Positions 1 to 13,437 of a stretch of DNA of 64,000 bases are shown here, in pieces. The position numbers and the translations under genes were made by a program. The first letter of the stretch is position 1. Every line of letters begins with the position of its first letter. The DNA lies in the IMG/VR virus record IMGVR_UViG_3300020084_000003, positions 186,001 to 250,000 of that record. One strand, 5' to 3'. Under the pieces are notes generated by a model. It was not told where the DNA came from. It did no database searches and saw nothing but the letters and a program-made list of their open reading frames with translations.

Positions 1-220
1 AAGGAAATGTTACTTCAAATGGTTTATCTGGGCAACCAGCAGCAATGTGACTGTCCAGTGCGTTAGACCAAATCTCTCTTGTGATAGATTGAACTTTATC
101 AGCATACAAGCCTGAAATCAAGGTTTGAAATGCCTTACTATTTGCAACAATAGTAAAGGCATTTGTATCACCGGAAGAATTAATAGTTACGTCATTCTTA
201 GCATGTTTAGTAGTAATCAT
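1..220 (-). CDS. rIIA: RIIA-like protein (GHKL/Hsp90-like ATPase N-terminus), partial; runs off the left edge
   Basis: Not in the ORF track. Manual translation from ATG 220 (RBS TAAGGA) gives MITTKHAKN...KAFQTLISGLYADKVQSITREIWSNALDSHIAAGCPDKPFEVTFP, matching the RIIA LYxDK-RExxxNAxD motif. Confidence 0.75.
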   Translation of the reverse strand, partial: MITTKHAKNDVTINSSGDTNAFTIVANSKAFQTLISGLYADKVQSITREIWSNALDSHIAAGCPDKPFEVTFP

Positions 221-229
221 AATATATCC

Positions 230-901
230 TTATTCCGTGTTTTGGTTCCTCATTGGGCTACACACCGCATCCAGCATATCTGGATACCAATCGCCTCTAC
301 GCATCAATGTTTTAATTCTAATACCATAGCTGTAAACCTGACATTCGTTAACACCCGGTGCAACTACAGCGGCAACTCTGTCAGGATAGAAGAAATATCC
401 TCTGGTAAAAAGAGAATAAACTTGGTGAAATGCAGTCGGTCTTACCCTAAAGTAAACTGAGTTTGCTTCCGAACATGGAATGGTTTCACATCCGCGAACC
501 GAATAAACATCGTCTTCTGGGTTTACCTCTTCCGCATTGGTCAGATATATAACCTCATACTGCTGCGTTGTCAAGAACAAAGTTGCCTGATATGAGAAAA
601 ACAAAACCATAGGAATAAGATAAAGTGAAGCAACTGTGGCGAGGATCACCAGACCTGCCCTCATACGGGAAAATCTACCATCACCTTTGTATAGGGTCCA
701 TTTCCAAATTTTAATTTCTCTTTTGTAAACTAGTTTATTCCAAATCCACATGTAACGATCAGAAAACCAGCGCCATACACGAAAGATTCTGCGCCCAATG
801 GGGACCATGATTTTTTGCCAAATCCATGTCAGACCTAGCATATACTGTGCCAGCCATTTAAGGACTCGGGCAGGCCAAGGTTCTTTAAGATATTCGCTCA
901 T
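230..901 (-). CDS. Membrane protein: Trp/Arg-rich N-terminus, one TM helix, Cys-containing extracytoplasmic domain
   Basis: Hydrophobic AGLVILATVASLYLIPMVLFF; four Cys downstream; C-terminal YGIRIK...YP weakly recalls DUF1523. Confidence 0.6.
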   Translation of the reverse strand: MSEYLKEPWPARVLKWLAQYMLGLTWIWQKIMVPIGRRIFRVWRWFSDRYMWIWNKLVYKREIKIWKWTLYKGDGRFSRMRAGLVILATVASLYLIPMVLFFSYQATLFLTTQQYEVIYLTNAEEVNPEDDVYSVRGCETIPCSEANSVYFRVRPTAFHQVYSLFTRGYFFYPDRVAAVVAPGVNECQVYSYGIRIKTLMRRGDWYPDMLDAVCSPMRNQNTE

Positions 902-939
902 GGGACAAACCTTTCATAAATGGGATGGGAAGTCCCGCA

Positions 940-3003
940 TTATAGAATGCGGAACTTTTTGTTTTCATAAATGAACTCAAGTCTACCTGAATTGCCATCA
1001 AGAATGAAATCAGTAACTTGCGGCTCAAGCTGTGAAATAATGAAGCCGGGAAGACCACGCGCACCTGTTCTAGCATCATAATTTTCTTCACAGAATTTTT
1101 CAATGCAAGCATCACTAACCACAACATCAACATTGGAATGTTTGTAAGAATTCGCAACGTCAACCAGTTCACGCTTAACAATCTTTTCAATTGAATCAAG
1201 TTCAAGACGGTTAAAGCAAATGATGTTCTGACGGCCATTGAAACGGTTTAGGAATTCTGGACGATATTGCTCATCCAAATCAACCTTAGCCAATTTCTCA
1301 GCATCATCAAAGGACAGGTCCATATTAAGGAAATGAGGCTGACCGATGTTTGTTGTCATAATGATAATAGATTCCGAGAAATCTGCAACACGACCAACGT
1401 TATCAGTAAGACGCCCATCATCCAGAATTTGAAGGAAAAGGTTGAACACATCTGGGTGCGCCTTTTCAATCTCATCGAACAGGATGATTCGGTTTCTATT
1501 CTTTCGCATCTCATTTGTCAAGATGCCACCAGCTTCAAAGCCCTCGTAACCCGGAGGCGCACCAATTAGTTTAGAAACTGCATGACGCTCCATGTATTCC
1601 GACATATCAAAGCGCAGCAAAGCCTTAGCATCACCCTGTAGGGCTTCTGCAATTCTTTTAGCAACTTCTGTCTTGCCAACACCTGACGGACCCATGAACA
1701 GGAAACTGGCCTGCGGCTTGTTTTTATTCCGACGCCCAACACGTGACACTTTAATTGCGTTGGATGATTTCACCAGAACATGATCCTGACCGAAAACATG
1801 ACTTTTAAGAATTGTTTCAAGATTACGTAGAATCTCTTTTTCATCTTCGTCAAGTTTGTTTGCAGCAATACCAGTAATACGTGAAAATTCCTTTACGACT
1901 TCATCACGGGTAAGCATTAGATCAGCATTCATAATTTCAGTTAGTTCATCAAATTCTTTCTTTGATTTGATTACTTCTTCCTTTGCTACTTCTAGCATCT
2001 GGCGAAGACGAGTGATTTCAGGAGTATCATACGTTGTCCCTGAAATAAGAGCATCAAAACCAGTGTTTGCTGGACCCTCAGAACCTTTTTCTTTTTGAAT
2101 TTCAATCAGTTCTGCGATCTTTTCTTCAACCGAAACAATTGAATTTTCAGCTTGCCGTTGGCGATTGTGTGCATTACGCATACGAGCCTGACGATCCTTG
2201 AATTGCTTCACCTGTTCAATCATATCTTCTTGATTTTCAGAATTTTTCACAGAAGGCGTCCGGTGTGAGTCTAGACGATACCCGGCCAGCGCACGATCTA
2301 GCAGAGAAATTGCGCGACTTGGCTGAGAAATTCCTAGACCATTATCAATGCGATATTTAACTGTCAGTTCTATTGCAGTCTGAATTGCCTCTTCTGAGAT
2401 TTTAATGCGATGAAAATCTTGAAGTTTTGCAGCACCAGCATTGGTGATTTCTACCAGTGCTTCACCAACCGGCTCAGTCACATCCATCATGGTATAATTT
2501 TCACGAATATCTGAATGCCACTTGATAATGGGATCAATTGCAGAATCCGACACTTCAAGAATAACTTGAAGTTTACCTTCTTTGACTGCACTATTGATTA
2601 CGTTGATAAAATGCGAAGTCCCTGCGTTGCGGCAAGCTTCATAAAAATCACCAGTGTCTTCGATAATCAGAATAGGATCAATAGTATTGCGAAGACGGCG
2701 AATAGCAGAATTAAATGCTTTTGTAATCTCAGCATTATCACCTGACGAAAACATATTATCAACATCAAGCCAGAATAGCCTTTTTGCGACCAAATCAAAC
2801 GGCGCATTATCATCCGTTTTCATTTCTTGTAGCCCAAGGCATAGTGCGGTAGAACCAACACCAGAAGGACCAACCAGAAGAACAGAATTGCATTTCTTAC
2901 GAACAAGAATTGAAGACAGCAAGTCCATTTCAGCTTTACGACCGACTAGCTTGAAGTCTTTAATTTTGCTAAGATAGTCACTACCATTAATAAGATAATC
3001 CAT
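940..3003 (-). CDS. clpB: ClpB-like AAA+ ATPase lacking the N-domain; NBD1 degenerate, NBD2 intact
   Basis: NBD2 GPSGVGKT, RFDMSEY, GAPPGYEG, ILFDEIEKAHPDV, GRLTD, RPEFLNR, GARGL; NBD1 GPSGVGST/IIED; coiled-coil M-domain between them. Confidence 0.85.
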   Translation of the reverse strand: MDYLINGSDYLSKIKDFKLVGRKAEMDLLSSILVRKKCNSVLLVGPSGVGSTALCLGLQEMKTDDNAPFDLVAKRLFWLDVDNMFSSGDNAEITKAFNSAIRRLRNTIDPILIIEDTGDFYEACRNAGTSHFINVINSAVKEGKLQVILEVSDSAIDPIIKWHSDIRENYTMMDVTEPVGEALVEITNAGAAKLQDFHRIKISEEAIQTAIELTVKYRIDNGLGISQPSRAISLLDRALAGYRLDSHRTPSVKNSENQEDMIEQVKQFKDRQARMRNAHNRQRQAENSIVSVEEKIAELIEIQKEKGSEGPANTGFDALISGTTYDTPEITRLRQMLEVAKEEVIKSKKEFDELTEIMNADLMLTRDEVVKEFSRITGIAANKLDEDEKEILRNLETILKSHVFGQDHVLVKSSNAIKVSRVGRRNKNKPQASFLFMGPSGVGKTEVAKRIAEALQGDAKALLRFDMSEYMERHAVSKLIGAPPGYEGFEAGGILTNEMRKNRNRIILFDEIEKAHPDVFNLFLQILDDGRLTDNVGRVADFSESIIIMTTNIGQPHFLNMDLSFDDAEKLAKVDLDEQYRPEFLNRFNGRQNIICFNRLELDSIEKIVKRELVDVANSYKHSNVDVVVSDACIEKFCEENYDARTGARGLPGFIISQLEPQVTDFILDGNSGRLEFIYENKKFRIL

Positions 3004-3033
3004 ATTTTCCTCTTTTTAATTGATGGAAATTAA

Positions 3034-3055
3034 TGAGGGGCCGTTAAGCCCCTCA
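3034..3055 (-). terminator. Hairpin / probable intrinsic terminator
   Basis: TGAGGGGC-6nt-GCCCCTCA; same stem as 33711-33730. Confidence 0.65.
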
Positions 3056-3057
3056 GA

Positions 3058-4728
3058 TTAGAAACTAAATGAGTCTTTGGTTTTTTGGTTAGTATCTGGT
3101 TTGATACCTAGTGCATCTTCTGCACGTGCAAATTCACCATGAGCCATCTTAGTGTGTAGTGCTTCCGCATCACGTAGTTCTTTACGCAGATGTTCAGTTT
3201 GCTCAAATAGCGCAGTCATGTTTTCGTTCATTACAGTCAGACCTTGGCGAACAATATCAGACGAAGCTTTTTGAGTGTCGCGGAACGATTCTAGTTCAGC
3301 AAAAACGCTTTCCATGTCATTGTTGATTTTATCAACATTCATCGCATTACGAATGACTTCTTGTTGAGTAATTTCGTTAGTGCGGCGGCGCATGTGATCC
3401 AGAGTTTGTTCAACTACACCAGCAGATTCGCTAATAGCAGCACCAGATACAGCAGTCATGACAGATGCAAGACGATCAGCAGTTGCAGAAACACCCTGAG
3501 TATTCAGTTTGCGGGCAACATCGACTTGCTGATTTGTTGCTTCTTTCATAGAATTGACGCGAACGGTTTGTTGTGACAATTCGCCGTATGTTGTCAAGGT
3601 TTCGCCCTGTGCGCTATGCAGCATTTTTGAATGAGAATCTAGGTTGCGAAGTTTATCTTCGGTTTCCATTTTGGCAATAATGTCATCGCCAACTTCACCA
3701 AGACTTTTTTCAAGATCATCACGCTTGGACAGGTTTGTGGTAGCGGCAGTTTTCATGCCTTCTGTCATAATAGCATAAATTGAAACCATTTTACGGTTGT
3801 TATCGTCGGCTTTATCCAGTTGCTCAGTCAGAGTCCCAAATTCGCCGCGAATTAGATTTGTATTATCACGTGCGCTACTCACAAAATTAAGTGCAGAGTC
3901 ACGCAGACGAACAACTCGCGCAGAGTTTTCTTCGGATGAAAGATCAAGCAGTTCGCGAAGACGCTCTTTGTGGACAGCCATTTCGCCCAATTCAGATTGA
4001 CGATTAATAGTTTCATTCCGCATTTGTGTAATACTGTCAGCAAGTTCTTTTGCTTTTTGCTCACTTTGCTGAATAAGCAGTTCATTTGCAGCGATTTCTT
4101 TGCGGGCAGCTTCGGTGATGTTGCCATAACCAAACAGACCACGCTTTTGTGCCAGTTCAACGTTTTTCACACGGAGTTCCTGTGTCTTACGCACATTTTC
4201 AATGCGCTCTTGCTCTTTTTGAGCAAGATCAACTTTACGCTGTTCATCTGCCTTACGGTCATTTTCAATTTCTTGATATGCCTTGTGAAGATCGCCAGAT
4301 GTGCGTAGTTGATAAATGGAGTCGATAATTTCCATTAGCGGTTGAAGATCAGTTTCAAAGTCAATAAGACCTTTATTCATATCTTCAATAACACGCTGTA
4401 GCGATGCAAACGTGTCAGTATTTGTTAGTTCAATAATTTGTTCGGCCAGTTTTGTGTTCTGGTGTGAAAGCCATTCGCGGAATTCTTCATAGGCTTTAAT
4501 ATTGGCCCGATCCTGCTCTTTGTCTAGAGTAGAAGTCATCAATTTAGCCAATTCTGCCTTACGCTCATTAGGCGTTGCATTACCTGCAAGCATAATTTTA
4601 TAAATTGCGTTTCCTTGAATGTTGTCGGATGTATCTTCTTTAGTCGTAGAGCGCGCACTATTGCGAATACGCTCACGAACAGAATCATTAACTGCAACCG
4701 AACGTTTTAGACTTGAAGCACCTGCCAT
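3058..4728 (-). CDS. Long alpha-helical coiled-coil protein, function unknown
   Basis: Heptad-rich with almost no Pro; likely start MAGASS at 4728 with RBS GAAAGGA. Confidence 0.7.
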   Translation of the reverse strand: MAGASSLKRSVAVNDSVRERIRNSARSTTKEDTSDNIQGNAIYKIMLAGNATPNERKAELAKLMTSTLDKEQDRANIKAYEEFREWLSHQNTKLAEQIIELTNTDTFASLQRVIEDMNKGLIDFETDLQPLMEIIDSIYQLRTSGDLHKAYQEIENDRKADEQRKVDLAQKEQERIENVRKTQELRVKNVELAQKRGLFGYGNITEAARKEIAANELLIQQSEQKAKELADSITQMRNETINRQSELGEMAVHKERLRELLDLSSEENSARVVRLRDSALNFVSSARDNTNLIRGEFGTLTEQLDKADDNNRKMVSIYAIMTEGMKTAATTNLSKRDDLEKSLGEVGDDIIAKMETEDKLRNLDSHSKMLHSAQGETLTTYGELSQQTVRVNSMKEATNQQVDVARKLNTQGVSATADRLASVMTAVSGAAISESAGVVEQTLDHMRRRTNEITQQEVIRNAMNVDKINNDMESVFAELESFRDTQKASSDIVRQGLTVMNENMTALFEQTEHLRKELRDAEALHTKMAHGEFARAEDALGIKPDTNQKTKDSFSF

Positions 4729-4744
4729 AGTATAATTCCTTTCA

Positions 4745-4963
4745 TTAACCAAGTGTATAGATTATTAAGTAGTAGATTGGAAAAAACGGGAAGAACAGAA
4801 CTTTCTCGACCCATGTATATTCCGAAAATTTGAATTTAGGTTCTAAAGGAACCATGTGGTTTCTTTTCTCAAAGATTGTTTCATAGATGCCGATGCCGAT
4901 AGCACCAAGAATGCTACCGATCCATGCACCTATAAACAATCCTAAAAGCCATTCGATACCCAT
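4745..4963 (-). CDS. Small two-TM membrane protein
   Basis: Two hydrophobic segments; RBS AAAGGA. Confidence 0.6.
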   Translation of the reverse strand: MGIEWLLGLFIGAWIGSILGAIGIGIYETIFEKRNHMVPLEPKFKFSEYTWVEKVLFFPFFPIYYLIIYTLG

Positions 4964-5274: not shown

Positions 5275-5535
5275 TTACCCCCATATTATTGAAATACTGT
5301 TCTTGAGTATTCCCCTATTAAGGGAACATTTAAATCCTAAGTTTTCGAAATGTTCGATGATTAGTTTATGATTAACCTTGCGGTTAATATTCTTCTTAAC
5401 ACCATACATTCCATTGGTAGCTTTCTGCTCAATTTCATAGTTTATCTCGGAAATCAATACGGAAATTTCTTTATCATTAATACACTTTTCATAATATTGA
5501 TCCGCTAATTCCCGCATTTGATCCGCGTATGTCAT
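5275..5535 (-). CDS. Hypothetical phage protein
   Basis: ATGA overlap with thg1 stop; RBS AGGGAG. Confidence 0.55.
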   Translation of the reverse strand: MTYADQMRELADQYYEKCINDKEISVLISEINYEIEQKATNGMYGVKKNINRKVNHKLIIEHFENLGFKCSLNRGILKNSISIIWG

Positions 5536-6335
5536 TTTGGCTCCCTATGCCTTAGATCATCAAAAAATGCAATTTTATTCTCGAAAGACATTTTCGAAAA
5601 GTGTTTTGCTGTAGCCATCGCCACTTTCTTCCTTAGAATTACATCCCCATTTTCTCCCGTAATCTCAGTTTTTTCTCTGAAAATAACGGTTCCATAGCGA
5701 TATTGTTCCGGGTATTCGGCTTTAGCATCAATTCCGCGCTCTAGCATATCTGCATACATTTGTTTTCCAGATAGCTTTTGCATTGCGGCATGTCCAACCC
5801 TCCAACGATATACGCAGGACACGAAGTTTTTCTTACAATCCTGAATGCGCCAAAGAACAGAGTTGACAGCTTCGCCAACATCAGGGACGTTGAAAATCCT
5901 ACAATCAAAACGGGCAATATCTCCCGCTTTAAATTCTTCCTCTGCCGCAAATAGAATTTTTTCTTCTTTTACATTACGCAGGAAGAAAGCTGTTGCAGAT
6001 GCAGCGAAAATGCTAGTGCTTTTCTGCACTCGCCCATCAAACGGAATACATACTTTCCCGTTATCAGATTTGGGCAGAAAAATCAATGTGATTTCATCAG
6101 ACTGCACGTAACCAAAGTCTGCATGTAATTCGTCAACCAAATCCTTCGCAGTCTGCACCATGCAGTTGACCATATTACTATCATATGGTTTAACCATTTT
6201 ACTTGTGTATTTGGAAAACCGTTTTCCATCAATCCGACAGATAATAGGAGAATCAAGACTTAGAAAAGTCTCGGAGGACTTCTCATAAGCCTTCATCCTA
6301 TTTCCAAATTCGTCGTTCTTTTTGTAATCGCCCAT
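5532..6335 (-). CDS. thg1: tRNA(His) guanylyltransferase Thg1-like protein (3'-5' polymerase)
   Basis: RMKAYE, RIDGKRFSKY, YVQSDEI, FDGRVQK, FDCR, WRIQDC motifs; both catalytic Asp present. Confidence 0.92.
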   Translation of the reverse strand: MGDYKKNDEFGNRMKAYEKSSETFLSLDSPIICRIDGKRFSKYTSKMVKPYDSNMVNCMVQTAKDLVDELHADFGYVQSDEITLIFLPKSDNGKVCIPFDGRVQKSTSIFAASATAFFLRNVKEEKILFAAEEEFKAGDIARFDCRIFNVPDVGEAVNSVLWRIQDCKKNFVSCVYRWRVGHAAMQKLSGKQMYADMLERGIDAKAEYPEQYRYGTVIFREKTEITGENGDVILRKKVAMATAKHFSKMSFENKIAFFDDLRHREPK

Positions 6336-6559: not shown

Positions 6560-7576
6560 TTATCGCACCATCTCAGTTTTATTTTTAAGCCATTGAACAG
6601 CTTTCGCACCAATTACTTTCTTGGCCGAATTCATATCAATGCCCGATGCTTCACGCTCATTAACAGTTTCTTTTTCAATATCTGCAATGATAGCCCGCAT
6701 GAAATCGGGGGTGCGTTTCATTGAATATTCACCTTCACAATGCTCGGTAATCATTTGCTCACAACGTGCATCAGTGACATACGTATCAGCAAATTCATAA
6801 ACAGACGCAGGGACTTCAACTTTAACCTTTGCACCCTTGGTTTTATTTGCACTATGGGCTTCTGTCTTTGCTTTAAAGACCATTGCACCAAATAGATCGC
6901 GAGGAATACGAGCATAATTGCCGTCTAGCGATGGGTAGCAAACATAACCTTCACCAAAACCTTCGACGCCGAATAGATCAAAGATATATTCGTCTTTGAC
7001 AGAAATAGCATCAACCTTTTCGTTGATGTAATCTGCGAATGCTTGCGGCGAATTTGTTTCGTCCGATCCAAAGAAAACAACTTTACGTGCTTCATCTGCC
7101 CAAGGAAGAATGAAAACATCTTCATGGGTTGCCAGTTCGACCGAAATGAGTTTTTTAATTTCATCTGGTTCTGCTACGATATGACGTTCATTACCATTGA
7201 TAATTTCAATTGAAAAAATGAAGAATTTCTTTGAAGAAAGGCGCGTCACCGCGTCACCATTGTTGATGCCGTTGCCAGCCCACTCCCCACAAATAACATA
7301 CGTAGCATCTGGATAATCATATAGAGGATCAATTTGCCAAGCATCATAACCAATTTGGTTCGCCCAATTTGCGAAACCAAAGTTATCACTATTAACAGTA
7401 ATATCTTGCGAACGCTTTTGGTAAAAAATTCCATCTGGTTCAACACGAACCGCAGCATTAGTGCCGTGCAACTTGACCTTTGGACGATAGAACGCCTCTT
7501 TAATAAATCCACGTTGTGCAAAAATGATCGCATCCGAAAATTTATCAATTGAAGTCCACTTAACAAAACCAGTCAT
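6560..7576 (-). CDS. ATP-dependent RNA ligase, Rnl2 family
   Basis: Motif I KLHGTN, GEWAG, FFIF, GEGYV, FKAK; likely start MTGF at 7576 (RBS AAGGAG). Confidence 0.85.
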   Translation of the reverse strand: MTGFVKWTSIDKFSDAIIFAQRGFIKEAFYRPKVKLHGTNAAVRVEPDGIFYQKRSQDITVNSDNFGFANWANQIGYDAWQIDPLYDYPDATYVICGEWAGNGINNGDAVTRLSSKKFFIFSIEIINGNERHIVAEPDEIKKLISVELATHEDVFILPWADEARKVVFFGSDETNSPQAFADYINEKVDAISVKDEYIFDLFGVEGFGEGYVCYPSLDGNYARIPRDLFGAMVFKAKTEAHSANKTKGAKVKVEVPASVYEFADTYVTDARCEQMITEHCEGEYSMKRTPDFMRAIIADIEKETVNEREASGIDMNSAKKVIGAKAVQWLKNKTEMVR

Positions 7577-7606
7577 AACAATCTCTCCTTTCAATTTCAT
7601 TGCCCT

Positions 7607-8001: not shown

Positions 8002-9396
8002 TTACATTGCAGCATTTTCCCTGACTTGATCGAATTTCCAATCATAAATCAGGCGACCGTTTTCAAAGACAAGACCAAGTTCATCTTTTGCAAGATTTTC
8101 TTCGGTTTCAGGAACAGTGAAATAATCACCGTTGATATCTTTAATTACGCAGAATTTGCCTTGTTTAGATTTTTTGACCGGATCGGTGACAGGGCTTTTG
8201 CTGATTGCTTTGCCAACACCGTCAATGACCACGTAGCTTGCTTTCATGGCAAATTTTTGGTCATCGCGTTGTGGTGCGCCAAGCAGCTTGCCACCCATAC
8301 CAAAGGTAATGTTGTCACCAGACATTTTGTAGCTTTCCATATTTTCGTAAATCTTGGAGATAGAATCTTTGTCGATGCCATCGCCTTGAATTACACGAAT
8401 ATATGGAGGAAGAACTTTATAACCCTTTTCGTTAACAGTCCATCCGAAAACATTCATCAAAATGCGAATAACTTCAACTGGAACAACGGTAGGATCGCCG
8501 CTATCAGGACGAACAACCAGAGTTGCGCCAACTTCACCCAATGAAATCACTTTGTCTTTAAGAGTTCCACCCACAACATTTTCAACAAAATTGTAAATAT
8601 CGTAAGTATCAGAAACCGCAGAAATGATTTTCATTCCAGCCGCTAGGCTCTTGTCGATGTGATTTTCAAGATATTCTGCCTCTTGGTCAGGACCAAAAGA
8701 AGTAGAAATTGAATGCTCAGTCGCAGGAACAGAAAACGCAGTGGTGTTCAAATCTGCATTGTAGTAATTCATTGCAAATTCAAGACCAGAAATGGTATCA
8801 GTTCCCATGAAGTTGACTAGGTGTGCTGCACCGCCAATACCAGCAGATTCAAAGGTATGTGCGCCACGCGCCCCAAAATCGTGCAATTTGAAAAGAAGGC
8901 CACCAACATCACCAGTTTTTTCCAGATTCCGTTTAATCATTTTCTTGATTGCACGGCTATTGGTTGCCACAGTGGTTGGATACCAGATAGCGCGAAGCAT
9001 AGCGGTTTCAACCCAAGTGGTTAGCCAGTAAAATTCTGGATCGGTGTTGTAGATGGTTGCCATAACCGTTTTGGTCTTGACAATACTTCCCTCTGGAAGA
9101 GCTTTAATAGCAAGGGGAAGGAAGCCGTCATGTTTTTCAACAATACGCATCCACCCTTCGGTATTGAAAGGTTCACCATGAATTTTCATAAGACGTTCTG
9201 CTTTCAAAACATCTTGTTTGGTCACAGGTTTCATCAGATACTCCTTGATGAAATATTGCAGACCGAAAAATACCAATTCATCTTCATTGCCACCACGACT
9301 TTCAACATAACTGTAAACAGTAGTGGTGTTTTCTGGGTATTGTAGGAACATGCCTACTTTATAGCTGTCGGTATTAGTAATAATATTCTTTTCCAT
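8002..9396 (-). CDS. nadV: Nicotinamide phosphoribosyltransferase
   Basis: TDSYK, LHDFGARG, VPATEHS, VSDTYD, VRPDSGDP, IQGDG, FGMGG, KKSKQG. Confidence 0.95.
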   Translation of the reverse strand: MEKNIITNTDSYKVGMFLQYPENTTTVYSYVESRGGNEDELVFFGLQYFIKEYLMKPVTKQDVLKAERLMKIHGEPFNTEGWMRIVEKHDGFLPLAIKALPEGSIVKTKTVMATIYNTDPEFYWLTTWVETAMLRAIWYPTTVATNSRAIKKMIKRNLEKTGDVGGLLFKLHDFGARGAHTFESAGIGGAAHLVNFMGTDTISGLEFAMNYYNADLNTTAFSVPATEHSISTSFGPDQEAEYLENHIDKSLAAGMKIISAVSDTYDIYNFVENVVGGTLKDKVISLGEVGATLVVRPDSGDPTVVPVEVIRILMNVFGWTVNEKGYKVLPPYIRVIQGDGIDKDSISKIYENMESYKMSGDNITFGMGGKLLGAPQRDDQKFAMKASYVVIDGVGKAISKSPVTDPVKKSKQGKFCVIKDINGDYFTVPETEENLAKDELGLVFENGRLIYDWKFDQVRENAAM

Positions 9397-10102: not shown

Positions 10103-10472
10103 TTTCAAATACCTCATAAAACATAGTTTGAACCCTAAGACTAACAAGACTGCCATTAGTCAGGATATATTTCTCATTATTCGATTTATCAATAACATAG
10201 TAATACCTATGCTTTGTGTTGTAATTTATGGTATCAATGTAAGTATATTCAACACCTTCGACTTTAATTGACTTGGGAATGTATGAAAATTTATCATCAA
10301 CCATTTCTACGAAAGTATGTCTACTTGTAGACACTACAGAATGTTTTTCTGATTTTTTCATTTCATAGTCAATAGTGCTAACGGGAGGTTTTCCTCCGTT
10401 AGCAAATATTGAGGCACAAATCACCAAGTGGGCATCTCTCATAATATTTCGAATTGCCTGCCGGTTTTGCAT
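10092..10472 (-). CDS. Hypothetical protein
   Basis: Translationally coupled to natV (TAATG overlap). Confidence 0.55.
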   Translation of the reverse strand: MQNRQAIRNIMRDAHLVICASIFANGGKPPVSTIDYEMKKSEKHSVVSTSRHTFVEMVDDKFSYIPKSIKVEGVEYTYIDTINYNTKHRYYYVIDKSNNEKYILTNGSLVSLRVQTMFYEVFENAV

Positions 10473-11521
10473 TAGTCAATTCCGATATAGAACGAGATGA
10501 TATGGAAATGGTCTTCAAAACACATTTCGCGCCTGATATCGTGGAAAGGAACCCATTTTGCTTTTTCAGCATCATCGGCACCTTTTACGTGCGGAAGATC
10601 AGGGAAATTCCCAAGATCAATTTTTGCAGCGTGAGTGATTACTCGACCACGTTCCGAACGACCCGGATTGTCAAAAGTATGAACATGCTTGATGTTACGC
10701 TTAATAACTTCTTCCGGCACTTTAAGCAGAGTTTCTTCACGCAATTCTCGAACGATGCAATCCTTGATACGCTCATATGGATTGATAAAACCACCCGGAA
10801 GCGCCCAAAGACCTTTCCCCGGCGCAACTTTACGTTGAACCATAAGGACGTGACCCGATTGAATGACAACAGCATCGCCCGTAACAAACGTAGGAGCATA
10901 CGGCGCAACTTCCCAAGATTTCTTGTAAGCTTTGATATATTCATATTCTTCTACGAGTTTAACACCAGTTTCATCTTTTTCCAGAATTGCCTCAATATCT
11001 TCAAAAACACTGAGTTTTACAAGATCAGAAACATCCAGTTGATTTTCATTAGGAAGGCCATATGTAGCACGATTTTCATAAAATGCGGTGCGAACATCAG
11101 TAGCATTCATCACAAGACCCTTGCGATTTTGCACAGGCTTGACTTCAACAGTCTGCCATTGCGGGAAAAGAACGCTCAGATAATAAGACGACGCATCTTT
11201 AGCGTAACCAATAAGACCAATTTTGGCATCACGCGGTGCGATGTTATAGACAGCCTTTTGCACACCCGCAACCCATTTATCGTCATTATACGGGTAATCG
11301 TAGATAGGTGCAGTAATAATTTCAGGATTGGCACGATGCACCCAAAGTTCTCGTTCTTCATACGTGAACGGATTTTTCAGAGTGCGCGGTTCACCAGCGG
11401 AACCGATTAGGGCGATAACATTGTCAGCATATTCATATGCGACGTTTAGAACCTCAGTATGTGCCAGTGTGACCGGTTGCATACGCCCAATAAAAACTAG
11501 ATAGTCGAACTTCTTTTTCAT
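10472..11521 (-). CDS. natV: Bifunctional NMN adenylyltransferase / ADP-ribose pyrophosphatase (NadM-Nudix)
   Basis: FIGRMQPVTLAH, GSA...KNPF, NATDVR; Nudix box WALPGGF...RELREET; PGRSERGR; DDAEKAKW; FEDH. Confidence 0.93.
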   Translation of the reverse strand: MKKKFDYLVFIGRMQPVTLAHTEVLNVAYEYADNVIALIGSAGEPRTLKNPFTYEERELWVHRANPEIITAPIYDYPYNDDKWVAGVQKAVYNIAPRDAKIGLIGYAKDASSYYLSVLFPQWQTVEVKPVQNRKGLVMNATDVRTAFYENRATYGLPNENQLDVSDLVKLSVFEDIEAILEKDETGVKLVEEYEYIKAYKKSWEVAPYAPTFVTGDAVVIQSGHVLMVQRKVAPGKGLWALPGGFINPYERIKDCIVRELREETLLKVPEEVIKRNIKHVHTFDNPGRSERGRVITHAAKIDLGNFPDLPHVKGADDAEKAKWVPFHDIRREMCFEDHFHIISFYIGID

Positions 11522-11557
11522 AGCAAAAACTCCTTTGCATATTTCTTTTACAGTCTC

Positions 11558-11586
11558 TTTATATCACTTACGAGAGTCGTTGTCAA
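11558..11586 (-). promoter_or_regulatory. Sigma70-type promoter of natV
   Basis: TTGACA-17nt-TATAAA. Confidence 0.7.
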
Positions 11587-11830
11587 CCCCCTTTTCCTCT
11601 TCCATTTCTTTCTTTAAATCGTCATATACTTTTTTCATTTGGGGCGCTTCGTTACGAACCAATGAAATTATATGTAAAGTGGTGTAAATGAAAGGAAAAA
11701 CAATCATAAAAATTATAATTCCAAATGGAATCTTAAATAGTGAGGTTAGGCTTAATGCCATTAGAATTAAGCCCATATAGAACATAATAGAAATTGTTCT
11801 TTTATATTTTAAGTTATCGTTCATGTCCAC
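11564..11830 (-). CDS. Small two-TM membrane protein
   Basis: Two hydrophobic helices and a charged C-terminal tail. Confidence 0.55.
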   Translation of the reverse strand: MDMNDNLKYKRTISIMFYMGLILMALSLTSLFKIPFGIIIFMIVFPFIYTTLHIISLVRNEAPQMKKVYDDLKKEMEEEKGVDNDSRK

Positions 11831-12258
11831 AACGCATTATAGAAGGTTCCGAACAAGATAAGACCGTTTTCAATCCTTTTTTCTACAGCAGCGATTGCTT
11901 CATCATCTCTGCTAACTAGGGCAGAATCTTTCCAAACTTCAAACTCTTCTTCCCATTCGCCCCACTGCTTTTTTCTTTCAAAAGCAAAAATCATTTCGTC
12001 TATAACCCATTCCCATTTCAAATATGCACTATCATCAACGTCTTCTCCCCATTTATTACCATTCTTTAGATGGTCAGGGACAAGAGAATCATCAACAAAA
12101 GGACAGCCCTTGTATTCCTTTAGCTTTAGAAGAAGGGGATGGATAATCAACGCCAGAGTATGATCTGCATTCCAAGTATCATAATCGTGTATTTCGATTT
12201 CAACTTTTCTTTCAGACTCTTCATCTAGGTTAGGATACGGGCCTATTTCAATTTTCAT
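11821..12258 (-). CDS. Conserved phage hypothetical protein
   Basis: DTWNADHTLALIIHPLL and W..VIDEMIFAF...GLILFG...LW pattern typical of large myoviruses. Confidence 0.6.
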   Translation of the reverse strand: MKIEIGPYPNLDEESERKVEIEIHDYDTWNADHTLALIIHPLLLKLKEYKGCPFVDDSLVPDHLKNGNKWGEDVDDSAYLKWEWVIDEMIFAFERKKQWGEWEEEFEVWKDSALVSRDDEAIAAVEKRIENGLILFGTFYNALWT

Positions 12259-12259
12259 T

Positions 12260-12943
12260 TTAACTGTCCTTCATAAAACGATGACCACCAATGACAACGG
12301 TTTGTCGCATGGTATCAGACCAATAGGGATTTACTTTGTTTGGATTGTAGTAGTGATCGGCACCCATGCTGTTATCAGGGATTTCACCAGAAATTGCCCT
12401 ACGGGCGATATCAAGAGCAACCATGAAAGAATGACGCTCTTTTTTGCCGCGAAGATTCATGTATGGGCGCTCAAGAGTCCAAGAAAATTGGCTATCTTGA
12501 TAGACAACACCACAAACAGTATTGGGCCAGCGACGGCTTTTGACACGGTTTAGAGTGACAAGAGCAACCATTTCTTGACCGCGAATACCTTCACCACGGG
12601 CTTCATGGTAGAGATTTTGTGCCATGCAAATGATTTCTTCTTCAATGTTGGCGTCAGTAACCAAAGGTTGGTTATGAACGACAAAAGAAGCCGAATGAAT
12701 GGCGTCAAAGTTATTTTGGAAATTGTATTTGAAAGGGACAATGTTTTCCACAGTCTCAGTTTCAGTCTCTTCTTCCACATATGGGGCTACAAATACAGTA
12801 TCAGGAACCGTAGCAACGCTAACCTGACGCGGCCTGTATTCTTCCCTGTATGCTGCACTGACTTCTTTGTAGGACGCCGAAAAGGCAACCACTGCAAAAA
12901 TGTTCAGTCCAATAAGTGTGTTTTTAACTGCTTTCGTAAACAT
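12260..12943 (-). CDS. SleB/Hydrolase_2 cell wall hydrolase with N-terminal signal/anchor
   Basis: CMAQNLYHEARGE, VTLNRV, WPNTVCGVVYQDSQFSW, GADHYY, IGGHRF; likely start MFTK at 12943. Confidence 0.88.
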   Translation of the reverse strand: MFTKAVKNTLIGLNIFAVVAFSASYKEVSAAYREEYRPRQVSVATVPDTVFVAPYVEEETETETVENIVPFKYNFQNNFDAIHSASFVVHNQPLVTDANIEEEIICMAQNLYHEARGEGIRGQEMVALVTLNRVKSRRWPNTVCGVVYQDSQFSWTLERPYMNLRGKKERHSFMVALDIARRAISGEIPDNSMGADHYYNPNKVNPYWSDTMRQTVVIGGHRFMKDS

Positions 12944-12974
12944 TGTCCCTCTCATGATTCGTTTCGTTAGAACA

Positions 12975-13003
12975 CTTCTAACATCTAGTAGGTGTTGTGT
13001 CAA
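12975..13003 (-). promoter_or_regulatory. Sigma70-type promoter
   Basis: TTGACA-17nt-TAGAAG. Confidence 0.6.
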
Positions 13004-13437
13004 CGATAAAAATCGTGGTTCCCTACTCTTCTTTCAAAGGGTCTTCTGTCATGAAAGCTACTGCGGCTTCCAGTTCTTTTGAAATACAAAGCGTTTGTAT
13101 TCAAAGTGCTTTTCTTGCCAGACAAAATATCTTCCGATAGTTTAACTATTTCCCTATATTTTGATTTATTGTTGATAGGAGGATTTCTAGGAACCCATGA
13201 GAATTGATTTCTCTCATTTACAACGCCACAAATTGTGCTAGGGAATTTTGGATTGCTTGCTCTATTTAGAGTAACATCTGCGATCATTAGCATTCCTTCT
13301 AAACCTTCTCCACGGGCTTCGAAGTATATATTTTTTGCCATGCATTCAACATCTCTACTTGAATAATTGGCCGCAGCAGCAGATTGTGCAAATAGTAGTG
13401 AAATGCATACCATTATGCATTTGATAGTAGTAGTCAT
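13000..13437 (-). CDS. SleB/Hydrolase_2 cell wall hydrolase with signal peptide
   Basis: Signal peptide ending SAAAA; CMAKNIYFEARGE, FPSTICGVV, QFSW, VGNHDFY. Confidence 0.88.
   Translation of the reverse strand: MTTTIKCIMVCISLLFAQSAAAANYSSRDVECMAKNIYFEARGEGLEGMLMIADVTLNRASNPKFPSTICGVVNERNQFSWVPRNPPINNKSKYREIVKLSEDILSGKKSTLNTNALYFKRTGSRSSFHDRRPFERRVGNHDFYR

Follow-up and report, generated by a model that had tools for sequence, protein, structure and literature searches.

A conserved cassette of a helical protein, a half-dead ClpB-like ATPase and a membrane protein in jumbo phages and bacterial chromosomes

Three genes upstream of rIIA

We analyzed a 64,000-nucleotide stretch of DNA (positions 186,001 to 250,000 of IMG/VR virus record IMGVR_UViG_3300020084_000003; hereafter the window) and focused on three genes at its beginning that lead into rIIA. 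The virus record is 284,776 bp long with a GC content of 38% and linear ends, is 100% complete according to CheckV and represents a jumbo phage; near-identical DNA was found in lake-water metagenomes only. We call the three proteins CC (a 556-amino-acid helical protein), ClpBL (a ClpB-like ATPase) and TM-OB (a membrane protein with an outer OB-like domain). A preliminary description, made from the sequence alone, had noticed co-oriented, tightly packed genes running into rIIA, and this is what the locus contains: all are on the minus strand, separated by spacers of 54, 38 and 9 nucleotides (nt), and transcribed in the order CC, ClpBL, TM-OB, rIIA and rIIB.

3058-4728, minus: CC gene, 556 amino acids (aa) from an ATG with an AAGGA ribosome-binding site
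54-nt spacer between CC and ClpBL, holding a 9-bp GC-rich hairpin
3034-3055, minus: stem-loop of 9 bp (6 GC), right after the CC stop and 30 nt ahead of the ClpBL start
940-3003, minus: ClpBL gene, 687 aa
38-nt spacer between ClpBL and TM-OB
230-901, minus: TM-OB gene, 223 aa
9-nt spacer between TM-OB and rIIA
2-220, minus: first 73 codons of rIIA, starting at 220 and leaving the window at its edge

The length of about 556 aa previously given for the first protein was also correct, as translation from the ATG exactly reproduces a 556-aa database protein; the list of open reading frames (ORFs) offers an alternative start, a TTG at 4752 that would give 564 aa. Across the whole genome, rIIA encodes 832 aa (phrog_612, E 3.9e-109) and is followed by rIIB with 464 aa (phrog_609, E 2.5e-73). 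The stem-loop between CC and ClpBL was identified with a terminator-like scan and is possibly an attenuator or an RNA-stabilizing element setting the ratio of CC to ClpBL expression; as its U-tail is weak, such a function can only be suggested. A second hairpin (935-952) spans the stop codon of ClpBL and may likewise affect the expression ratio or RNA stability. The T4-type late promoter motif TATAAATA was not found within 23 kb of the module, and a sigma-70-like promoter scan of the region gave no excess over shuffled sequences.

The cassette recurs as a unit in phages and bacteria

In a profile scan of all loci, ClpBL came next after CC at every independent locus (24 of 24). Downstream DNA was sufficient to look for TM-OB at 20 of them, and TM-OB lay directly behind ClpBL at 18; L012 and L016 are the exceptions. 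Locus L045 (unpublished genome G440), retrieved with a PspA search, was left out of all results. The order is kept across phyla and in both viruses and cells at protein identities of 23–60%, with CC down to ~23%. An order repeated at 24 independent loci far exceeds what chance would give. The homologs of the three genes are thus not independent of one another, and the proposal that they form a functional unit gains support from phages and bacteria alike. The proposed tie to rIIA did not survive the same comparison: among the 20 loci with downstream sequence, rIIA and rIIB lie behind the cassette in just two, the window and a close relative (L009), and no rII gene lies beside it in Agrobacterium phage Atu_ph07, in the other phage contigs or in any of the bacterial genomes examined.

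Among 50,697 phage records, only Atu_ph07 carries CC and TM-OB, and a megablast search of the region against the same records gave no match; scanning IMG/VR with the CC profile found one locus only. Metagenomic homologs of CC all occur in the context of CC, then ClpBL, then TM-OB. Using one genome per prokaryotic species, we found the cassette in Pokkaliibacter plantistimulans (on a complete chromosome), Dongia, Taklimakanibacter and Rhodospirillales as well as in Geminicoccaceae, Parvibaculaceae, Verrucomicrobiota and Bdellovibrionota. Its bacterial flanks consist of unrelated cellular genes that change from locus to locus.

L015: between thiolase, LysE and AraC at one end and deoxyribosyltransferase and GGDEF-EAL at the opposite end
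L020: between histidine kinases at one end and TetR and HlyD at the opposite end
L021: between DUF58, DUF1285 and CCA-adding enzyme at one end and a glycerol-3-phosphate oxidase/dehydrogenase-type FAD enzyme (Pfam DAO/DAO_C) at the opposite end
L012: rplU-rpmA-obg

In a maximum-likelihood tree, the ClpBL copies of phages and bacteria interleave. These loci show joint inheritance of CC, ClpBL and TM-OB in both jumbo phages and bacterial chromosomes, regardless of rII. The synteny, the foreign flanks and the interleaved tree thus indicate an autonomous and horizontally mobile cassette whose adjacency to rIIA is specific to one lineage. Since the same order recurs in jumbo phages and ordinary chromosomes, it is a machine in its own right rather than an accessory of rII.

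Some copies differ from the common form. The bacterial ClpBL of L012 (7547-10231, plus strand) has 894 aa, ~200 aa more than the others, and is followed in the place of TM-OB by proteins of 70 and 411 aa without a known family; this may be a variant cassette. Motilimonas eburnea carries a second, divergent CC paralog (L019, 3861-5489, plus strand; E 1e-83) ~1.4 kb upstream of the cassette, on a 178-kb contig that may itself be a phage or a plasmid. The CC homolog of a 2.2-Mb bacterial genome (G052, contig 15, ~83.0-84.3 kb; L030-L032) is broken by TGA, TAG and TAA stops, the several stop codons marking it as part of a decaying cassette copy. Separately, ClpB-like matches at 30–35% identity were found in many phage-collection records, unannotated contigs named for Listeria, Enterococcus and Staphylococcus phages; their sequences resemble ordinary bacterial ClpB/ClpC, which suggests host contamination.

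CC forms a helical family of its own

CC had no match in Pfam, PHROG, NCBIfam or PADLOC, and across 29 members Pfam stayed blank even at E 10. A word search gave 28 relatives of 514–558 aa, and an exhaustive HMMER search with a profile yielded, in clusters at 50% identity, 327 with E <=1e-3, of which 195 had E <=1e-30; with its 327 clusters, the family is not a one-off. The AlphaFold2 model is all-helical, with a predicted local distance difference test (pLDDT) score of 76 and helices of up to 130 residues at 266–345 and 350–479. As the maximum 19-residue hydropathy is 1.3, the protein has no transmembrane (TM) segment and is expected to be soluble. Two features lie at its N terminus.

4612-4728, minus: low-complexity, predicted disordered N-terminal tail, residues 1-39 (pLDDT <50 at 1-10 and 18-33)
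4588-4620, minus: motif at residues 37-47, here IQGNAIYKIML (family form I-x-x-N-P-F-[YF]-K-I-x-F)

Across 160 full-length CC members, the tail before the motif has 27–74 residues (median 44), is rich in Ala, Ser, Thr and Lys and contains no Trp or Cys. The motif includes Asn40, which is present in 159 of the 160 homologs and is the most conserved position of the family. The motif is a candidate for a docking or membrane-binding helix.

Two candidate families were rejected. TelA (PF05816) had an ESM feature score of 0.88, but there was no HMMER match and hhalign against 11 TelA sequences gave 0.1%. For PspA/IM30/ESCRT-III (PF04012), hhalign against 7 PspA sequences gave <1%, in comparison with 100% for the positive control, and the Pfam search at E 10 found nothing. 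A profile search of PDB with CC gave nothing meaningful. ClyA-family alpha pore-forming toxins, with a helical tail bundle and a hydrophobic head hairpin, were considered as well, and CC was not recognizable as a pore-former. With no family matches and with TelA and PspA excluded, CC stands as a separate family.

ClpBL is an Hsp100 with a degenerate first ring

ClpBL matches phrog_4871 (E 3e-171) and has the Pfam domains AAA_lid_9 (residues 184–282), AAA_2 (429–589) and ClpB_D2-small (600–671); the N-terminal domain Clp_N had no Pfam match in it. Residues 18–671 align in a single collinear stretch with residues 171–828 of T. thermophilus ClpB, for which structures have been solved, and ClpBL begins at the equivalent of ClpB residue ~171. 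The two nucleotide-binding domains (NBD1 and NBD2) differ in their motifs.

940-3003, minus: ClpBL layout, with pseudo-ATPase NBD1, M-domain-like insert, active-type NBD2 and D2-small; the N-domain is missing
2848-2871, minus: degenerate Walker A of NBD1, GPSGVGST, with Ser51 at the Lys position (aligned to ClpC GEPGVGKT)
1879-2157, minus: M-domain-like coiled-coil insert, residues ~283-375 (collinear with ClpB; split alignment with the shorter-linker ClpC)
1669-1692, minus: canonical Walker A of NBD2, GPSGVGKT

Aligned to ClpC, the Walker B of NBD1 reads IIED where IDE is expected, that is, ED and not DE, and both the pore-loop Tyr of KYRG and the Arg-finger pair are absent. NBD2 is intact, with Walker B LFDEIEK, pore loop GAPPGYEG, sensor-1 MTTN, an Arg finger and the GARG sensor-2. 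The preliminary description had called the ATPase a half-dead ClpB, and the loss of the NBD1 motifs together with the presence of every canonical NBD2 motif agrees with this. We extended the comparison to 17 homologs, 9 from phage-like contigs and 8 bacterial. The Walker A Lys of NBD1 is absent in all 17, replaced by S, C, A, V or L; in the same 17, the Walker B reads ED, EN, PN, DN or DD and the pore Tyr and Arg fingers are missing, and NBD2 is canonical throughout. As NBD1 is dead in all homologs, the half-dead state is an ancient, family-wide trait and not a result of decay. Judged by its motifs, the protein belongs to the Hsp100 ATPases and has a single working ring, NBD2.

No ClpBL homolog has the ClpP-docking tripeptide [LIV]-G-[FL] after sensor-1, where the loop region is shorter, and a short N-terminal segment, FL-x-x-G-x-DYL...F-x-L-x-GR, is conserved. 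In ClpB, the M-domain is the DnaK-binding and regulatory site. The M-domain-like insert varies in length within the ClpBL family and has lost a part in Atu_ph07 and L003; such variability argues against a conserved DnaK-binding site (motif 2) in ClpBL. The protein falls under every NCBIfam cutoff, scoring 395 vs. 993 bits for ClpA, 373 vs. 1232 for ClpB (TIGR03346) and 343 vs. 885 for ClpV. Its matches in PADLOC 2.0 are confined to NBD2 and are to PDC-M37B and DolB, and no single known anti-phage defense system there is matched by all components of the cassette.

TM-OB is a single-pass membrane protein

TM-OB had no Pfam or PHROG family and no PADLOC match, and of its 45 relatives, ~205–230 aa in length, none has a Pfam domain. 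The AlphaFold2 model (pLDDT 91) consists of a helix at 9–58, a TM helix at 79–112 and a beta domain at 114–216.

728-877, minus: cytoplasmic helix, residues 9-58, long, basic and Trp-rich; poorly conserved except for Y50 and W54
590-664, minus: transmembrane segment, residues 80-104 (hydropathy 2.49)
254-562, minus: outer domain, residues 114-216, a putative OB-fold-like beta-barrel, predicted periplasmic

As the N-flank has a charge of ~+3 and the C-flank is acidic with ~-0.5, the orientation is predicted to be N-in/C-out. Exactly one hydrophobic segment is present in 36 of 41 homologs. Of the four Cys in the outer domain, two (C187 and C214) are invariant and the other two (C138 and C143) >=90% conserved; in the periplasm, they would fit two disulfides. 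The earlier picture of a single-pass membrane protein with a Cys-containing outer domain is thereby upheld, with one segment at 80–104 and four conserved Cys.

A distant link between TM-OB and DUF1523 (PF07509) is possible but unproven. The ESM feature score was 0.85 and the template modeling score 0.80 by target, against a cluster partly carrying DUF1523. The hhalign alignment was collinear over 116 columns and ended in a similar V-x-V-x-x-YG-x-R...YP motif, with a probability of just 1.3%, and HMMER found no DUF1523 match among TM-OB proteins. In both, a beta domain of comparable size comes after a TM helix, whereas DUF1523 proteins contain an additional TM helix and none of the four Cys. 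Two wrongly chosen ORFs of high-GC loci were excluded from this comparison. In one phage-like contig (L014), a Band_7/SPFH membrane-scaffold gene (11403-12596, plus strand) lies ~0.3 kb, or one small gene, downstream of a shortened TM-OB homolog and gives a further hint of membrane-proximal function.

Genes around the cassette

Upstream of CC lie, in this order, three small ORFs and the genes for a Thg1-like protein, RNA ligase, NAMPT and NMNAT-Nudix; beyond them are two cell-wall hydrolases, a metallophosphatase and the small subunit of ribonucleotide reductase. Downstream of rIIB are a Dda-like helicase and a phosphoesterase.

4745-4963, minus: 72-aa ORF with two hydrophobic segments; its stop overlaps the CC ribosome-binding site
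5532-6335, minus: Thg1-like tRNA-His guanylyltransferase (E 8e-28)
6560-7600, minus: RNA ligase
8002-9396, minus: NAMPT (NAPRTase + NAMPT_N)
10472-11521, minus: fused cytidylyltransferase-like/NUDIX protein (NMNAT-Nudix type)
12260-13003 and 13000-13437, minus: two tandem overlapping SleB-type cell-wall hydrolase genes (Hydrolase_2)

The 72-aa ORF is conserved only in L009 (34% identity) and is therefore lineage-specific and outside the cassette. The Thg1-like protein and the adjacent RNA ligase are likely a tRNA repair set; Thg1 is found immediately before CC in L006 and near CC in L009. By their domains, NAMPT and NMNAT-Nudix are a putative two-gene NAD+ salvage pair. The pair is also present upstream of the cassette in L009, and NAMPT is upstream in L006 and L014. 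NAD+ salvage pairs are reportedly deployed by phages against NAD-depleting defenses.

A putative membrane-linked remodeling module

Our preferred reading, held tentatively and with somewhat less than even confidence, is that the cassette is an autonomous and mobile AAA+ remodeling module linked to the membrane and acting at the cytoplasmic face of the inner membrane. The division of labor first suggested for the three proteins, a cytoplasmic helical partner or substrate, an AAA+ motor and a membrane anchor, fits the anatomy that we found. An action in anti-defense or superinfection control, suggested at the same time, is speculative. Hexamers of ClpBL would bind the N-terminal tail or motif of CC and unfold, disassemble or recycle a CC assembly; in place of the lost N-domain, the dead NBD1 ring together with the conserved segment at the N terminus of ClpBL may form a docking platform. 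Going by the parts list, CC would most simply be the client of ClpBL, being elongated, carrying a conserved disordered tail and being invariably encoded beside an unfoldase; a surplus of CC over ClpBL would agree with the hairpin between the two genes. The cytoplasmic helix of TM-OB and its disulfide-type outer domain would place the system at the inner membrane, where TM-OB could act as a tether or trigger and couple the module to the state of the periplasm or envelope. In phages, the module would most likely preserve or remodel the host inner membrane through the long infection of a jumbo phage. Phage cassettes lie among repair and counter-defense genes (tRNA repair, NAD salvage and rII), and this neighborhood fits, without proving it, a role in keeping the infected cell functional. 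The adjacency of rIIA and rIIB in this lineage may be a local accident of gene order or a loose functional grouping.

Several results weigh against this reading. No homology was detected between CC and any polymer-forming or membrane-remodeling family, and polymerization and membrane binding of CC are for that reason purely what we infer; fold searches with Foldseek against PDB, VIA wide and the ESM Atlas returned only generic helical bundles at noise level. Complex prediction for residues 1–400 of ClpBL with full-length CC gave a score of 0.01, which decides neither way, and none of the RNA-seq runs contains the phage. L012 and L016 lack a recognizable TM-OB. Finally, the cassette is rare, being present in 2 of 401 sampled Pseudomonadota genomes, one of the two copies a pseudogene, and such rarity is no less to be expected of an accessory or conflict system than of a housekeeping stress system. 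A bolder form of the same idea is rather doubtful: the cassette would be a hitherto unrecognized membrane-remodeling or membrane-repair machine common to bacteria and jumbo phages, with CC a new family of membrane-associated polymer, ClpBL its dedicated disassemblase and TM-OB a periplasm-sensing trigger. It would act in the manner of ESCRT-III/Vps4 but have no homology to them, and phages would use it to guard the inner membrane against abortive-infection effectors that target membranes.

Alternatively, though this seems unlikely to us, the module could be a proteostasis device, a stand-alone targeted disaggregase in which CC, as adaptor or activator, takes the place of the N-domain and DnaK and delivers other clients to ClpBL. 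These might be aggregated or membrane proteins, possibly TM-OB or phage assembly intermediates. ClpBL is nearest to the ClpB/ClpA/ClpC unfoldases, keeps an M-domain-like insert and has lost the N-domain, the usual substrate recruiter, and the authors of the Atu_ph07 genome took its ortholog gp492 for a chaperone aiding host survival of infection (PMC6102473). On the other hand, the length of the M-domain varies, with partial deletion in some members, a 550-aa adaptor with a conserved disordered tail resembles a client more, and an obligatory periplasm-facing partner is left without a role.

It is less probable still that the cassette is a conflict system, a defense, abortive-infection or toxin-control module of bacteria that phages have captured for superinfection exclusion or counter-defense, with CC a latent membrane-active effector that ClpBL restrains or activates. 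A module working with RIIA and RIIB against Rex-type exclusion would agree with the 9-nt gap to rIIA and the same order in L009, but the absence of rIIA and rIIB at every other locus with enough downstream DNA largely refutes it, and we regard it as very improbable. That the three genes are unrelated neighbors without a joint function has nothing in its favor except the lack of interaction data and, contradicted by an order conserved across phyla, viruses and cells at 23–60% protein identity, is hardly credible.

Significance and comparison with known systems

The cassette defines a new Hsp100 subfamily, in which the first ring has been a pseudo-ATPase since the origin of the family and which is always encoded with two dedicated partners without a family name. 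The cassette moves between bacteria and jumbo phages and, once understood, would be a new example of a specialized AAA+ remodeler with a private client; if the membrane reading is true, it would add a new prokaryotic membrane-maintenance system and a new kind of phage function in host takeover or counter-defense. Culturable carriers, namely Atu_ph07 on Agrobacterium C58, Pokkaliibacter plantistimulans L1E11 and Taklimakanibacter lacteus, make these ideas testable. The literature on phage ClpB modules and phage-encoded membrane repair contained nothing on the cassette, the only paper on an orthologous locus being that on Atu_ph07, although our coverage was incomplete and an earlier description is possible.

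The genes gp493-gp492...gp488 of Atu_ph07 are true orthologs of CC, ClpBL and TM-OB, with identities of 31%, 49% and 41% and the same order; they differ in having three small genes before gp488 and no adjacent rII genes. The genome paper counts gp492 as one of the "Clp-like proteins" and proposes that it assists in general as a chaperone (PMC6102473). In annotation, gp492 is called ClpB or an ATP-dependent protease, both of which mislead for genes of this type and call for correction, and gp493 and gp488 are hypothetical proteins.

ClpBL shares with ClpB/Hsp104 the two-module AAA+ architecture, AAA_lid_9, the M-domain-like insert, ClpB_D2-small, the absence of a ClpP loop and NBD2 motifs of the same kind. 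It differs in lacking the N-domain, in the family-wide loss of NBD1 motifs, in its score (373 vs. 1232 bits) and in always being encoded with two dedicated partner genes. The combination of a helical cytoplasmic protein, an AAA+ ATPase and a small membrane protein is reminiscent, by analogy only, of Vps4/ESCRT-III/CdvA and PspF/PspA/PspBC, and comparative genomics has found that the PspA of some bacteria pairs with a double-AAA+ protein, the first of its two modules being inactive (PMC11237479). However, CC is ~2.5 times longer than PspA and hhalign gave it <1% against PspA/IM30, and the ATPase of the cassette is of the Hsp100 type and not of the Vps4 or NtrC type. ClpV (TssH), which acts on VipA/VipB, is likewise an Hsp100 dedicated to taking apart one specific partner assembly, but it has an N-domain and two active rings, whereas the cassette is found without type VI secretion genes and ClpBL reaches 343 vs. 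885 bits. Set beside these systems, the cassette appears as a specialized Hsp100 with private partners, and the chance that it is a membrane machine of a new kind is modest.

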